Below, piece by piece: positions 6,399-57,115 of a stretch of DNA of 64,000 nucleotides; the stretch's first letter is position 1, and each line of letters opens with the position of its first letter. The position numbers were made by a program, and so were the translations under genes. This stretch comes from Octopus sinensis (lineage: Eukaryota). The stretch spans positions 42,656,001 through 42,720,000 of the forward strand of contig NC_043004.1 in the NCBI RefSeq assembly GCF_006345805.1, read 5' to 3'. The notes under the pieces were generated by a model. It had not been told where the DNA came from. It did no database searches and saw only the letters and a program-made list of their open reading frames with translations.

Positions 6399-6617
6399 TA
6401 CTTTATTTAAAGCATCAGAAAATTCAACAAAACCTGTTACTCTGAGTTTCCCGTTCATCGGAGAGTGTTTGCTAACTGTCCGATGAACGGCAACGGGAAA
6501 CTCAGAGTAACAGGTTTGTTGAATCTTCTGCTGATTTAAATGAAGCATATTACTCTACCACTGGTATTTGAGTACTCTTCTTTCAACCTTGTTTCACATT
6601 TATGTGTTTACTCCGGT
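6399..6617 (+). mobile_element. Foldback (inverted repeat plus tail) non-autonomous element, probably Penelope-like pLTR-derived
   Basis: Arms about 6399-6462 and 6478-6547 are reverse complements. A 70-nt single-copy tail ends actccggta and runs into (TA)n. Confidence 0.75.
6476..6513 (+). ncRNA. Degenerate minimal type I hammerhead-like motif
   Basis: CTGT / CCGATGA / ACG-GCAA-CGG / GAA / ACTC-A-GAGT / A / ACAG. Deviations: U4C and an A.G mismatch at 10.1-11.1. Confidence 0.55.
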
Positions 6618-7000
6618 ATATATATATACGTACATACAAACACATACATGCACACACGCCACACCACACACACACACACACACCACACACACACACACAC
6701 ACACACACACACACACACACACACATATATATATATATATATATATATATATACTAATCCTATGGCGGGGGTTACGTTCAAAAACCAAACGCGATACATG
6801 AAAATTGGCGAAGAAACACCACTATCTATCTATATCTATCTATCTATCTATGTATCACTCTATCTACGTATGTATCTATCTATCTATTTATTTATATATC
6901 TATCTATATACATATATATATATGTGTGTATTTATGTATGTATATATGTATATATACATATATGTGTATATATGTGTGTGTGTATGTATGTATATGTAAT
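6618..7000. repeat. Compound (TA)/(CA)/(TATC) microsatellite
   Basis: Visible simple repeats; they explain the low-complexity ORFs here. Confidence 0.9.
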
Positions 7001-9030
7001 AACAACAATAGCATGAACCTCTCCTATTGGATTCATTAAAATCTAGACGCATAGAATGGAAACAATTAGGCTATCAAATTAAAATAGTATATGTGTGTAC
7101 GCATGTGTGAACGTGTGTCTGTTTCTCCATGAGCGTATGTGTAATATATATGTATATATGTGTGTGTGTGTGTGTGTGTGTGTTATATTTGTATGTATAT
7201 ATATATATATATACATACATGTTTGTGCCTATGTGCGTGTATGCATACATTTATGCATATAATTATGTTCAGTGCTTTACCTTTTATCAGTACTAATCAC
7301 GAATCACGAATTCGTATTCAAATTAAGTTTAGACAGGCGTAGTAAAACTCTACTTGAGAAGGCGGAGACTCGGAACAATTTCAACGTTCATCAAATTATT
7401 TCAAACAATAAGTGTATTACTTGTCCTTTGTTCTGCGTCAAGGAGCAATTACGATGAACTCTGTGAATGGAAAGACTGGGAAAGATACAATGCTGCTTTT
7501 ATTGCGGTTTCATTTGCTCCAGATATTCCTAATAACGCTTTTAATACGAACACAATCGATCATTTTCTCAAGTTTAAATTTCTAGATATCAGCTGATAAT
7601 GGTCTGTATTCTTAAAATAGCATAATATCTTCGTTTTGGACTAATGATACACATAATTGAACACTGAAATCTATTAAGCTTCGATTATTCAGTCAACCAT
7701 TAGGATTTACTAAAGTTACGAAAATAACACTTATTATTCCTTGGATAATTACTTATGCCATTGTGTGATCCTACAAATTAGAAGGATACAGCAGGAGTAG
7801 GATATATTCAATGATGTTGCCATCGAAATTTAGCCGCTGACAAGACACCCACTTCTATTTTGCTTATACCTTGCAACAGATGTATCACTTCAAAAATTCT
7901 AAATTATCAATAAATTATGATGTGATAAATAATTAAGAAATTGTCAAAATCTCAATCAAGAGTTGCAGATGCTAAATAGCAATTATTAATCTGAAAGCGT
8001 TTCCGTTTTAGTGATCCTTACCACAAGCATTCCTGCATAACTTACACTAATTAAGTATATCTTGCATTAACTTTCTTCTCAAACATGGACTGGTTTTGCA
8101 TAATATTGTAACAAATATTTTTAAGACAAAGACGTTTATAATGCACATCTGACCAGCTGCAGCTCAAATTTTTTTTTTTAGTGCTCACCAGAGATAAAAG
8201 CTACATGCATATACACGAAATTAACTTACACTTTTGTGAACGGCAGTGATTAAGCACTAGAAATATACTTAGCGGCATTTAATTGCTATATTGTTATATA
8301 TGTTGTTTTAAGTATCCACGTTATCAATATCTGTACTAAGTATCCGAAGAATACGATGCATACTACTGATAGACAGGCAACGTTGAGTTCCTGCGACAAC
8401 GACTACAACTAGAGCCATATGAACAGTGACGATTTCATGAAACTGGCGAATATCAAAATAGTAACTAACAAAGATTTCCACATTTTCATATATAACAGCT
8501 TTCCTCTTTTACGGTAGAATCATTTTTGCATTCTTCCAATCTTATAGCAGTGATGAGGCATATCCCTCTTTTCGATTCTATGCTGTCCATTGATCCGACC
8601 TTACATTCCGACATTGGTTAATAAGTTAGGATGGAAAGCAATACGCTTTAGGTGTTTTCTTGCATTTATCCTATTCTTTAGTGCTTGTATTTCATTTGAA
8701 GTTACGATAAACCCGAAAGAAGTTGAGTTCTATAGACGCACGAGAAAACATATATCTTGTTGAAGGTTATAGATTTAAAAGTATTCGGATATTTTGCGTA
8801 TCTCGGGAGCTCTGTTTCCAGGAATACATCCCTATATACTGTAATAAACCAGAGGATATAGGTCTCAAATTATTTGGAACATTGGAGAAACAATTCTGGT
8901 ATGGCATTATAGAGAGGATTGACATTCAGTCTTAATGTTATTGAAAACAAGTTAAGGACTAAAATAATCAGTTTAACTACTAGGTTTTACATAGCCTACG
9001 GATAGAAAGAAATGAAATAGATTATAATTT

Positions 9031-9712
9031 ACCTTCGTGGCAAATACTAGGCTAAACTAAATGCAAAAGAAATAGACAGAGAAAAATTCCCAGCAATGTT
9101 TGAGAAGCTCAAGATTCAAAGCAGAGACTAAAGGAGTTTCAATTGCAGCACAAGACGAAAGCCTCCCCACCCGAAATTACCAAAAACACATAAGGAAAAG
9201 AAACATAACAAGTAACTACAGAATATGTGGCGATGAAAAAGAAACGATAAATCATATTATCTCTGGCTGCTCCGTCCTGGCTAAGAAGGAATATATTCAT
9301 AGACACGACGGAGTTGGGACTTACATACACTGGAAGCTATGCCAACACTACTGAATACCAACAGCATAAAGATGGTAAAAGCACATGCCAGGAAAGTTCA
9401 CAGAAAACGAGAAAGCAACCATACTCTGGGATATGCCAATACACACAGAGAAATTAAGGCCAATAGGCCAGATATAGTTGTTAGAGACCATGCAGAAAAA
9501 ATGCTTTCTAATCGATGCATCAATACCAGCAGATGACAACGTTTCTCTAAAAGAAACGGAGAAACTTTCAAAATACAAAAACCTGGAAGTAGAGGTAACT
9601 TGAATGAGGAATCTAAAAACAGAATCAATACCTATCATAGTAGGCGCAGTAGATATGATAAAAAATACTCAGACAAATACATAACAAAATCATCAGAAGT
9701 TACAAATATATA
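9031..9712 (+). mobile_element. R4/Dong-like RLE LINE fragment (same subfamily as 43098-44983)
   Basis: CRICG-like..ETINHIISGCSVLAKKEYIHRHD (CCHC region) and NRPDIVV (RLE). Nucleotide similarity to about 44150-44820. Confidence 0.85.
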
Positions 9713-10126
9713 CATACAAACAATATACATAAAATATATACATATATACACATAGATAATCAGCGATTAAGAAAGCGAGAGAGATATAGTTAGATAAATA
9801 GATAGAGAGATGGATTTGGAGGAGGGAGAGAAGGGAAAAGACAGGGGGAGAGAGCGGGATCAAAACAAATATTAACACCATTTTACTAATATTGTTTACT
9901 TCAATATACGCTACATTAAAGTTTAAAGTGAATAGGTTTTATAACTCGAAGTTTACGTCTGTACTGACATTAGATTCGACAGGATATTGTAATACAGCAA
10001 TCGTCTATGCCCACAAACTTATGAATATCCAATAGAGTTATTTTGTAATTGAGATATCGGTTCTGAGATTTTATAAAGAAATTATTTCCAAAGTTTGCAA
10101 TATATTGATCAATGTTATATTCAGAA

Positions 10127-55192: not shown

Positions 55193-56458
55193 TTAGGCTG
55201 TCAAGAAAGTTCTTGCGGTTTTTAACCTTTAAATTCAGATGCACATATTTCGGCTCAAACAAAACTTTATGCATCAAAATAAACACCATCAGAATCAACA
55301 TTTTGCCAACGCGAAACAATTTTATTTATGCCAGTAGAGTAAAAATCCTGCGATCTCATGGCGATGAAGTCGTTGAAGGTGTGTTCGGCATCGTCTTGGG
55401 TTTTGAAGCATTTATCACGCAGAAAGTTGTCGAAATGCTTGAAAGAGACGTAGTCGATAGGCGAGAGGTCTGGTGAATATGGCAGATGAAACAGAGATTC
55501 ATAGCCCAATTCGTTCAACTACTGCAGGGTCAGCTGTGCGACATGCGGCCGAGCGTTGTCGTGGAAAAAAATTGGTCACTTTCTGTTGACCAATGCTTGC
55601 TGTTGTCGGATTTTCTTAAGCATTTCATCCATTTGCTGACAGTACTTCGCCGTCGTAATGGTTTCGCCTGGATCCAAAAAGCTGTGATGGGTGAAACCGG
55701 CCGCAGACCACTAAACAGTCACCATGACCTTCATTTGGTGCAACTTTGGCTTCAGGAAGTGCCGTCGAGATTCATCAGCGTCCATCCACTGAGCTGAGCG
55801 TTGCCGGTTATCGAAAGTATTCACTTTCATCGAAAGTTACAATTCGGTCGAGAAACAGGTCGTTCTTGTTTGCTTAAAAGAAGCGGAGGCGACACTTCAA
55901 AACTGAGTTTGTTTTTTTTTGGCTTGTCGTTCAATTCATGCGGTACCCATTTCTCAAGTATTTTTGTTTTTCTCTTTCAAGTGGTTAGAAATTGTCGTGT
56001 ACGTTACGTGTAAGCTTTCGAACAGATGTGTGTGGATTGGATTCCACTTAGGCTCTTAGTTCATCGTTGTCGACATCCGATGCCCGACATCTGTGCTTAT
56101 CATCTTCAAGACTCTCGTCACCGCTACGACATTTCTTGAATCACCATTGTGCTGTACGTTAATTAGTGGTTCCTGGGCCAAACGCATCGTTGATATTGCG
56201 AACAGTTTCAGCAGCTTTTCGGCCTAACTTGAACTGGAATAATAAATTGTGCGAATTTGCTTTTTGCCATATTATATTTAACGTTCCGGATAAAATGGCC
56301 TAATCATTCAAAACGAAAAAGTGTAACACAATTAGATAGTGCGAAAAACGGACTTTAAAATGATATATAAAGTCAAGGTAATTTAACGAAAATTAATTTG
56401 AAAATACATCATTTAAAACAAAAATTAAAATTCCGCAAGAACTTTCTTGACATACTAA
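55193..56458 (-). mobile_element. Full-length decayed mariner (Hsmar1/cecropia-like, DD34D)
   Basis: TIR ttaggctgtcaagaaagttcttgcgg vs ccgcaagaactttcttgacatactaa (24/26) with TA duplication; HLPYSPDLSPIDY...SRWQ. Confidence 0.9.
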
Positions 56459-56460
56459 TA

Positions 56461-56595
56461 ATGGTAGCAGGGAGGCTGGGACCGGGGAATTTCTGCGCAA
56501 AGTAACTATTCCGAAGGAGATGATGTTAAACTTAGATAAATAAGTTATGTTTTTATTAAACATAACTAGTTGTGGAACCATTTGGTACCACTTCA
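56461..56595 (+). mobile_element. 3' end of the mariner begun at 53540
   Basis: W*QGGWDRGISAQSNYSEGD (W..RW..CI...G.YFEGD-like), followed by a terminal repeat-like end at TA. Confidence 0.65.
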
Positions 56596-56907
56596 TATAC
56601 ATGCACAAACACACACATGTACACATGATACAGTATTAGCGTCCCGAGAGGCTGGTGGTGTCCACAAAGGATGAAGATGTGTGACAAATTAGGAGATCCA
56701 AACACTGCTCGCACTTCCAGATGTAAGTGATGCATATCTCACTCAAAGTATTAGGAGAAAGATATTGCATTCCCTACAGAATATGTTGAGTGTTTCTTTC
56801 ATTTGCCCATTAATTAATGCGTATGCTAAGGTATACTTCTGCGTGTGTATATATGTATATATATATATATATATATATATATATATATATATATATATAT
56901 ATATATA

Positions 56908-57115
56908 ACGGGAAGCTTATGAAAATAAACAAAAGACGAAGGCAGGTGGAATACAAACAAACAATTGTATTAGTATGGCGCTCAGGAATATAAATAAAAC
57001 AAGTCTTTTACGTTTCGAGCCTACGCTCTTCAACAGAAAGATACACAGAAAAGAAATACGGAGAGAAACAAGGAGAGAAAAAAATGCGTGTAGAAGCTAG
57101 CGAATCAACATGGCG
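56908..57115 (-). mobile_element. Short HHR-bearing element in (TA)n
   Basis: Second copy at 26907-27023; microsatellite flanks on both sides. Confidence 0.8.
57004..57041 (-). ncRNA. Minimal type I hammerhead-like motif (A6U, extra A)
   Basis: TCTTT / CTGTTGA / A / GAGC-GTAG-GCTC / GAA / ACGT / A / AAAGA. Confidence 0.6.

Follow-up and report, generated by a model that had tools for sequence, protein, structure and literature searches.

Hammerhead-like elements and Penelope-like remnants in the window

The window analysed here is a 64,000-nt stretch of the Octopus sinensis genome (NCBI RefSeq assembly GCF_006345805.1, contig NC_043004.1, positions 42,656,001 to 42,720,000 of the forward strand), which harbours several short elements with motifs resembling the type I hammerhead ribozymes of Penelope-like elements (PLEs), along with remnants of PLE coding sequence. 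Its A+T content is 66% and it is rich in microsatellites, with 35 arrays having a Tandem Repeats Finder score of at least 100. Many of its repeats are shared, at 75-86% identity, with a second Octopus sinensis locus on chromosome CM016859.1 (L002).

A sequence-only reading of the window had proposed four unrelated elements with hammerhead folds at five sites, and BLAST agreed that these elements, designated A, B, C and D, are mutually unrelated in sequence. They are given below with their motifs, together with element F, which was absent from that reading, and two remnants of PLE reverse transcriptase (RT) and endonuclease sequence.

6399-6545, no strand assigned: element A, a palindrome adjoining (TA)n, followed by a 66-nt unique tail to 6616
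6476-6513 (+): look-alike motif of A, CUGU CCGAUGA ACGGCAACGG GAAA CUCAGAG UA ACAG, with U4 changed to C, a 2-bp stem II and 3-8 C-G
18022-18157 (+): element B, a 136-nt rod-like imperfect hairpin with 12-nt inverted ends (18022-18033 and 18146-18157) and the hammerhead at its tip
18069-18110 (+): hammerhead of B, GCUACA UUGACAA GGGG-CAAUA-CCCC GAAA CGCG UC UGUAGC
23348-23617, no strand assigned: element C, a 270-nt near-perfect palindrome with arms 92-100% complementary and a hairpin minimum free energy (MFE) of -203.5 kcal/mol
23489-23539 (+): hammerhead of the plus arm of C, UUUGUCA GUGAACA G GUUGC-GGUCUCAAA-GCGAC GAAA AUAU UU UGACGAA, with 3-8 G-C
23424-23476 (-): hammerhead of the minus arm of C, with the same core and stem II GUCGC/GCGAC, having C-G where the plus arm has U.G
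23618-23680 (+): tail of C, a unique 63 nt from the right arm to a (TAT)n array
56905-57115 (-): element D1, one copy of a repeat family, ~210 nt long and bounded on either side by (TA)n-type arrays, 81% identical to L002 16116-16372
57004-57041 (-): hammerhead-like motif of D, UCUUU CUGUUGA A GAGC-GUAG-GCUC GAAA CG UA AAAGA, with A6 changed to U and 3-8 C-G
26904-27024 (-): element D2, a 5'-truncated second copy of D that keeps the 3' 121 nt and stops inside the motif, 96% identical to 56905-57023
58361-58512 (+): element F, an octopus PLE 3'-end segment of a ~150-nt family, head to head with a truncated PLE open reading frame (ORF)
58381-58424 (+): hammerhead of F, AUAC CUGAUGA .. GAAA CG UU AUGU (CUGAUGA ... 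GAAACGUU), with a canonical core
57646-58358 (-): PLE reverse-transcriptase remnant, 5'-truncated, with frameshifts and without the endonuclease domain, present as ORF fragments
63306-63560 (-): separate remnant of a PLE-type GIY-YIG endonuclease, its translation containing ..NFIYVLTC..YIGQT.. motifs

Pfam did not recognise the RT fragments of the window and matched the GIY-YIG remnant alone, below threshold (E 0.018); the PLE identity of the RT remnant was drawn from similarity at the protein and DNA levels. Its protein matches are RVT_1/HTH_animal proteins, the best named of which is Octopus sinensis LOC118763458 (49%), and its DNA is 79% identical to that of L002.

Core conservation and chance expectation of the motifs

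Motifs were sought with a descriptor of the type I hammerhead (stem I, 7-nt core, stem II, GAAA, palindromic helix III, UH and the stem I partner), the loosest setting of which returned exactly the five sites of the sequence-only reading and none besides. Only B and C were found to retain all of the invariant core bases besides positions 3 and 8 (U4 G5 A6, A9, G12 A13 A14, A15.1-U16.1 and H17), the core being broken in A (U4 to C) and in D (A6 to U, joined by U4 to C in the L002 copy of D). The consensus identities C3 and G8 are absent from both B (U-A) and C (G-C), though each still forms a Watson-Crick pair. Under the descriptor, B, both arms of C and D have the type I helix order, whereas A does not fold in this way.

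B, the only match to the strict descriptor, has helices I, II and III of 6, 4 and 1 bp, the last closed by the palindromic loop CGCG, and these sizes were not demanded by the search. Nor was the helix II closing pair G10.1-C11.1, which is present in B, C, D, a motif at 19754-19789 of a further locus (L003) and all of the control hammerheads described below, but not in A. Between A9 and position 10.1 there is an unpaired G in C, an unpaired A in both D and A, and an unpaired nucleotide in the control contigs L005, L008 and L009, and none is found there in B or L003 19754-19789. The palindrome made by 15.2-16.2 and loop 3, which the descriptor does demand, reads ACGCGU in B, AAUAUU in C, ACGU in D and F, and ACCGGU in L003.

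Dinucleotide shuffles, performed globally and in 1-kb blocks, provided the number of matches expected per window. A descriptor for B only was expected to match 0.00-0.01 times (1 observed) and one covering B and C 0.03-0.04 times (3 observed, at 2 loci), whereas relaxation for D raised the expectation to 0.4 (4 observed) and relaxation for A to 1.0 (5 observed). Comparison with shuffled sequence, on which the proposed folds were to be judged, thus sets B and C apart but not D or A. As shuffling removes the inverted repeats of real DNA, a decoy test was added, in which the hammerhead core words were swapped for composition-matched permutations in 383 descriptors. On the real window, 12 of the 383 decoys gave one strict match and two reached three loose matches. 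Across 126.5 kb of real DNA (the window and three other loci) the true words identified two strict and three loose independent loci, against decoy means of 0.042 and 0.104, and neither true count was equalled by any decoy (0/383). On these shuffle and decoy counts B and C exceed chance, whilst A and D are inseparable from chance by fold criteria alone.

Folding of the isolated motifs returned stems I and II for B (z -2.6), for C, in which the MFE structure is hammerhead stems I and II (minus arm, z -3.2), and for D. The whole of B, as RNA, has an MFE of -73.9 kcal/mol (z -9.0). The isolated motif of A gave no hammerhead fold (z +0.2); it was caught by the loosest descriptor only, for which about one match per window is expected, and its 'stem II' arises from a 6-nt tandem duplication (AACGGC, AACGGG) that the other arm does not have. 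The resemblance of A to a hammerhead is most likely due to chance.

Hammerheads of PLE-bearing contigs and the origins of D and F

Control contigs were reached through proteins related to the RT remnant of the window. Two of these, L005 and L008, contain PLE ORFs (RVT_1 + HTH_animal) with canonical hammerheads at the ORF end.

L005 2128-2169: GCCA CUGACGA A GACGC..GCGUC GAAA AU UA UGGC
L008 2108-2150: a hammerhead similar to that of L005

Both are shaped like the motifs of C and D: A9 is followed by an extra nucleotide, helix II is closed by G10.1-C11.1, helix III is short and palindromic, and helix I has 4-5 bp. Another invertebrate contig, L009, harbours four copies of CUGAYGA-A-GAUUUU(U)AAUC-GAAA-CG-UH within 21 kb, and its segments 11831-11895 and 12000-12064 constitute a 97% head-to-head inverted pair of hammerhead 3' fragments inside (TAA)n. 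This is the same architecture as that of C and A in the window, here built around an undisputed canonical core. The invertebrate loci L010 and L011, which consist of nested clusters of long interspersed nuclear elements (LINEs), contained no convincing hammerhead motif.

A covariance model, R1, was built solely from the canonical hammerheads of L005, L008 and the L009 copies. Its top and sole significant match in the window was D (29.8 bits, E 4.8e-4), on which ground D is, to judge from its sequence, clearly hammerhead-derived, a PLE-type relative with a damaged or variant core. As A6 is missing from both the window and L002 copies, D supplies no intact example of a C-G pair at 3-8. Of the sites originally proposed, B and C hold up, D holds up with its core mis-scored, and A is probably spurious.

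Element F scored 10.7 bits under R1, its stems I and II having decayed in the window copy. It is 79% identical both to L002 7040-6891 and to L002 10918-11060, the latter lying 3' of the L002 PLE ORF and sharing its strand, and it is homologous to L003 11551-11615, which is 3' of the PLE RT in that locus (contig ERZ21867824:ctg106936l, from a PLE-bearing invertebrate). The hammerhead of the L003 relative (11548-11593; UUCC CUGAAGA A GGCC..GGCC GAAA CG UU) is encoded on the same strand as the PLE RT. The relatives of F scored 21.5, 19.5 and 16.6 bits under R1, and stem II covaries among the copies (G-C/A-U, C-G/U-A). F (+) and the 5'-truncated RT remnant (-) are immediate neighbours in the window (58361 against 58358), the layout of an inverted 5'-truncated copy described for PLEs (PMC8557442). 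D, on the minus strand like the RT remnant and ~530 nt to the 3' side of it, belongs to a separate family. It was also considered as the 3' end of the PLE itself, a candidate that was rejected, the 3' hammerhead segment beside the PLE ORF in L002 and L003 being F.

The tertiary pair between positions 3 and 8

Alignment to the descriptor confirmed the pairs originally listed for positions 3 and 8 of A, B, C and D (C-G, U-A, G-C and C-G). The accompanying claim that these positions are always Watson-Crick compatible is partly an effect of pattern selection; as demanding such pairing renders the claim partly circular, positions 3 and 8 were left free in a rescan of 156.6 kb. All six independent families with an exact core proved to be Watson-Crick paired (U-A in B, G-C in C and L003 19754-19789, C-G in L005, L008 and L009) and none was unpaired. 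With a random Watson-Crick rate of ~27% at this composition, the probability of six out of six is near 4e-4.

The motif at L003 19754-19789 (UAACU GUGACCA GGU-AAG-ACC GAAA CCGG UU AGUUG) is a second G3-C8 case, hammerhead-like, the helices of which are unrelated to those of C although its GUGANCAGGU box is similar. It is located inside an imperfect, microsatellite-embedded palindrome of ~190 nt (19640-19845) that is bounded on each side by (AT)n and that holds the 5' half of the motif in its central spacer.

Covariation at this pair has precedents. A natural change from C3-G8 to U3-A8 was reported in 2011 by Perreault et al. (PMC3088659), where U3-A8 is the sole 3-8 covariant, and U3-A8 was found in PLE hammerheads in 2014, with ~1,300 matches in Schistosoma mansoni (PMC4209133). 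In the PAc PLE hammerhead, which requires its protein, cleavage is lost when either position is mutated singly and is regained in part when the two changes are combined in an engineered C3G/G8C double mutant (PMC11167929); C3G/G8C double mutants are also attributed to Martick & Scott 2006, as cited in that study. The G-C arrangement of C and L003 19754-19789 is the same as that of these constructs, which are laboratory molecules as opposed to genomic elements known from sequence.

A natural G3-C8 core, present in two unrelated elements from two genomes, may be the new point of this analysis. The 2017 work of Lunse, Weinberg and Breaker reportedly also concerns minimal type I PLE hammerheads. 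We found no literature report of a natural G3-C8 hammerhead, the core variants in the work of Lunse et al. 2017 being outside the literature covered. We tentatively suggest that G3-C8 might be a naturally maintained, catalytically competent core variant in PLE-dependent short retroelements of cephalopods or molluscs, a proposition that we regard as possible but doubtful. Were it true, no fewer than three of the four Watson-Crick options for positions 3 and 8 would occur in nature, U3-A8 and C3-G8 being the others.

Insertion anatomy of elements B, C, D and F

PLE insertions are characterised by 5' truncation, inverted copies, tails and a bias towards microsatellites, including (TA)n (Craig et al. 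2021, PMC8557442). All of these traits were present in the window: the truncation of D2, the orientation of F against the ORF remnant, the inverted pair and 63-nt tail of C, and flanks of simple sequence repeats (SSRs). The units of B, C and D are 130-330 nt in length, carry a minimal type I hammerhead 30-100 nt from the 3' end, with a helix III of 1 bp and a palindromic loop, and lie in or beside AT-rich microsatellites; by comparison, 4-5% of random intervals would touch an AT-rich SSR on one side and 0.1% on both. Strong 5' truncation, shared 3' ends, head-to-head copies, tails at one end only and a position inside AT-rich microsatellites together support a PLE-like mode of insertion, and L009 provides a canonical analogue.

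Element C can be read as two head-to-head copies of one ~130-nt unit, each ending in ..CACGCUGCAA. Its relative at L002 15396-15240 is a single, non-palindromic copy with the same 3' terminus, CACGCUGCAA, and the last 33 nt of the tail of C (23648-23680) are 85% identical to the reverse complement of L002 15364-15396, a segment situated 5' of the arm in L002. The other flank of C is a degenerate (TTA)n array, and the right end of C is followed by CT, not TA, so there is no TA duplication there. This arrangement fits a family of 3'-anchored copies with variable inverted partners, unlike a miniature inverted-repeat transposable element (MITE) with two obligatory ends, given that the L002 copy is one-armed with the same 3' end and that an inverted segment occurs in the tail of the window copy. 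Between the two loci, the hammerhead region is the best-conserved block (85%), and the pair 10.3-11.3 varies among the copies, being U.G and C-G in the window arms and U-A in L002. As in PLE hammerheads (PMC4209133), A9 of C is followed by an extra nucleotide, helix II is closed by G10.1-C11.1 and helix III is palindromic. A transcript across both arms of C would form a ~130-bp hairpin and not a hammerhead.

D1 and D2 are ~30 kb apart and share the same 3' end, with the truncation of D2 being 5' on the motif strand. Both full copies of D, in the window and at L002 16116-16372, have (TA)n arrays at both ends. Element B has an (AC)n/(TA)n tract to its left and (TA)n, at 18278, to its right. Its description as a simple inverted duplication was rejected as incomplete, since it is precisely at the two core strands that the arms diverge; past helix I the arms are ~70% alike in our own arm alignment, which fits a long copy facing a shorter inverted one. 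Like C, A and, on this arm alignment, B look like head-to-head pairs. A, B and C are each without direct or tandem copies in the window. An exact-pattern scan of JGI metagenome contigs with the 21-nt stem II/GAAACGCG block of B produced one match, at L007 3911-3931, which was rejected as a relative of B, being a chance match in a GC-rich bacterial coding region. Comparison of the stop-free translations of elements A-D with a collection of 5.8 billion proteins revealed no further copies.

Origin of the elements

The window is best explained as containing dead PLE copies together with short elements that were mobilised likewise and that bear PLE-type hammerheads, a reading to which we assign a probability of roughly 0.7. 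The copies in the window are relics, B being solo, C a long hairpin, D without A6 and F with decayed stems. Retroelement behaviour is preferred over cut-and-paste transposition because D2 is 5'-truncated with the same 3' end and the L002 copy of C is one-armed with the same 3' terminus. The short units without ORFs may be non-autonomous derivatives rather than truncated PLEs, and the data fit either. The proposal that non-autonomous elements borrow the RT and GIY-YIG endonuclease of PLEs is supported insofar as remnants of both proteins occur in the window and hammerheads of the same shape occur in true PLE contigs, but a plain 5'-truncated PLE end fits equally well.

By analogy with published work on PLEs and retrozymes, source copies would be transcribed as tandem or read-through RNA, within which two hammerheads could pair via the palindromic helix III, the dimer then self-cleaving, possibly with the help of a PLE protein. 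The PLE RT and GIY-YIG endonuclease might subsequently copy the RNA into nicked targets of the (TA)n type, with abortive copying leading to 5' truncation and template switching to an inverted partner and a tail.

Several observations weigh against this explanation. The looser descriptor settings were tuned once the proposed sites were known. The Rfam hammerhead models gave no match at gathering score or at E<=10, either over the whole window or on stretches of 181-286 nt that included B and C, though these models were not run on the PLE hammerheads of L005 and L008. R1 scored B at 9.5 bits (E 8) and did not report C. No second copy of B was found in the window or the other loci examined, nor any link of B or C to a PLE ORF. 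In the L002 copies the cores are damaged: GUGAACA has become G--AACA and GAAA has become GGAA in C, and D, at 20.2 bits under R1, has the core CCGUAGA and a broken stem II. Finally, the TA-flanked palindromes, the mariner remnants and the foldback at 13691-13935 also fit MITEs of the Tc1/mariner type.

The damaged L002 cores of C and D lend no support to purifying selection or to the suggestion that selection acts on the fold in these copies. They also bear on the alternative that B and C descend from hammerheads but that their U-A and G-C pairs reflect neutral decay, the variants being inactive and the covariation not maintained. We consider this doubtful, though of the alternatives it fares best: every window copy looks like a relic, damaging changes extend to F in the window, the arms of C stem from one recent duplication and so amount to a single observation, and only a single copy of B is known. 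Decay would nonetheless have had to introduce paired substitutions at the one compensable core pair, with the other invariant bases left intact, on three occasions (B, C and L003 19754-19789), which is unlikely, and the unconstrained rescan contained no exact core with a non-Watson-Crick pair among its six families. Moreover, families with U3-A8 occur naturally (PMC3088659, PMC4209133) and C3G/G8C is partly active (PMC11167929).

Element B could instead be a solo monomer of a metazoan non-LTR (long terminal repeat) retrozyme and not a truncated PLE end, a possibility that we hold to be unlikely. The helices of B, 6/4/1 bp with a 4-nt palindromic loop, are those of canonical metazoan type I hammerheads (PMC4209133), B is a highly self-paired rod, as are retrozyme RNAs (PMC7229834), and it does not have the PLE-typical extra nucleotide after A9. 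However, B has neither a tandem repeat nor a second copy, its 136 nt are fewer than the 150-450 bp of reported repeats, and its rod is readable, from our own arm alignment, as two inverted 3' fragments of different lengths. This alternative also overlaps with a PLE origin, since retrozymes have been argued to be PLE derivatives (bioRxiv 10.64898/2026.07.22.740005).

Less probable still is that the elements are foldback or MITE-type DNA transposons, Tc1/mariner-like with TA targets, in which the likeness to hammerheads is accidental. Tc1/mariner-type transposase fragments, with the helix-turn-helix part and DDE-region motifs such as ..SPDL.P.. as judged by eye from translations, are present at four sites in the window.

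12354-12696 (+): Tc1/mariner-type transposase fragment
16333-16623 (+): Tc1/mariner-type transposase fragment
35627-35944 (-): Tc1/mariner-type transposase fragment
55270-55518 (-): Tc1/mariner-type transposase fragment

Near-perfect palindromes are seen in A and C and 12-nt inverted ends in B, the TA-flanked foldback at 13691-13935 has no hammerhead motif, and Rfam reads C as a MITE-like microRNA (miRNA) hairpin (MIR6140, E 1e-14, below gathering), a match that reflects the long hairpin. This explanation is countered by the shuffle and decoy statistics, the one-armed L002 copy of C with its unchanged 3' end, the missing TA duplication at the right end of C and the 5' truncation of D, whilst the inverted pair of L009 is built around a canonical hammerhead and inverted PLE pairs have been published (PMC8557442).

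It is very improbable that chance, with a permissive pattern applied to AT-rich and repeat-rich DNA, accounts for all five motifs: Rfam is silent on hammerheads, the loosest descriptor expects about one match per window and large databases are known to contain hammerhead-like sequences that arose by chance (PMC3088659), but such an account holds for A only, given that none of the 383 decoys equalled the locus count of B and C, that D was detected by an independent model (E 4.8e-4) and has a family copy in L002, and that the PLE context fits too.

Relation to known ribozyme-bearing retroelements

The minimal hammerheads of PLEs are distinguished by a palindromic helix III, a dimeric mode of action, an extra nucleotide after A9 and G10.1-C11.1, and display extreme sequence diversity, solo motifs and opposite-strand pairs 100-700 bp apart (Cervera & de la Pena 2014, PMC4209133). 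The window elements resemble them in type I order, the 1-bp helix III, the palindromic loop, the U3-A8 variant, solo and opposite-strand paired occurrence, and the diversity of families. They differ in that B has canonical metazoan helix sizes and no extra nucleotide, the G3-C8 of C is absent from that study, no context of pseudo-LTR (pLTR) or ORF was found for B and C, and the source is an octopod. As insertions, they share with PLEs (PMC8557442; PAc in vitro study of 2024, PMC11167929) the truncation, the adjacent inverted copy, the tail at one end, the microsatellites and a hammerhead placed close to the 3' end or within the pLTR; unlike those insertions, the window units are mostly 130-330 nt and have no ORF. 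The (TA)n bias in the literature is that of the Naiad clade, which is without canonical hammerheads. B resembles natural U3-A8 hammerheads (PMC3088659) in having a compensated 3-8 change in an otherwise consensus core, though the natural examples are mostly from other contexts and other hammerhead types.

The non-LTR retrozymes of metazoans are non-coding, with a self-paired RNA and a type I hammerhead (Cervera & de la Pena 2020, PMC7229834), and Li, Clavereau & Pollet (2026, bioRxiv 10.64898/2026.07.22.740005) argue that those of animals descend from PLE pLTRs. The window elements are likewise short and non-coding with a type I hammerhead and, like retrozymes, are thought to be mobilised by PLE machinery; however, retrozymes are defined by tandem arrays of 150-450 bp and circular RNAs, whereas the window contains solo or inverted copies only.

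The covariation to U3-A8, dimer-type PLE hammerheads, the targeting of microsatellites and PLE-derived retrozymes are thus already published and not new. The sequence-only reading, which saw PLE-type, ribozyme-bearing short retroelements in AT-rich microsatellites, is right in outline and partly supported, and that outline was itself in the literature.

Should the G3-C8 and U3-A8 motifs prove active, ribozyme-bearing retroelements of invertebrates would be undercounted by standard searches in which C3 and G8 are fixed, Rfam being silent in this window. Their activity would also extend beyond U3-A8 the natural covariation evidence for the 3-8 tertiary pair of the crystal structures. For annotation, many short palindromes in the AT-rich microsatellites of octopus may be scars of PLE-type insertion and not MITEs or miRNA hairpins.

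Other repeats in the window

The foldback at 13691-13935, situated beside TA repeats, consists of 98-nt arms, 86% complementary, around a 49-nt spacer, has no hammerhead-like motif and could be a MITE or another PLE-type inverted pair. Just downstream of D2, at 27198-27825, are three tandem 210-bp units (98% matches), each with an AC/TA-rich end. A family of interspersed repeats of ~150-390 nt (14199-14588, 21986-22211, 49625-50027 and others) is abundant, with many copies, at 75-86% identity, in the 20 kb of L002; the family looks like a short interspersed nuclear element (SINE), but a tRNA search revealed no SINE head. Dozens of sub-threshold Rfam matches to mir-297, mir-3149, mir-466 and mir-1277 (for instance at 4766-4836 and 27730-27805) are TG/TA microsatellites and not miRNA genes.

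An ORF of 544 codons at 41192-42826 (+) encodes the C-terminal part of a LINE-type RT, inside which an (AAT)n microsatellite has expanded to give a long poly-Asn run. The DNA of this ORF is 96% identical to a 2-kb contig (L001) of the ENA metagenome assembly ERZ22666216, and therefore DNA of the species of the window, or of a very close one, is present in that sample.

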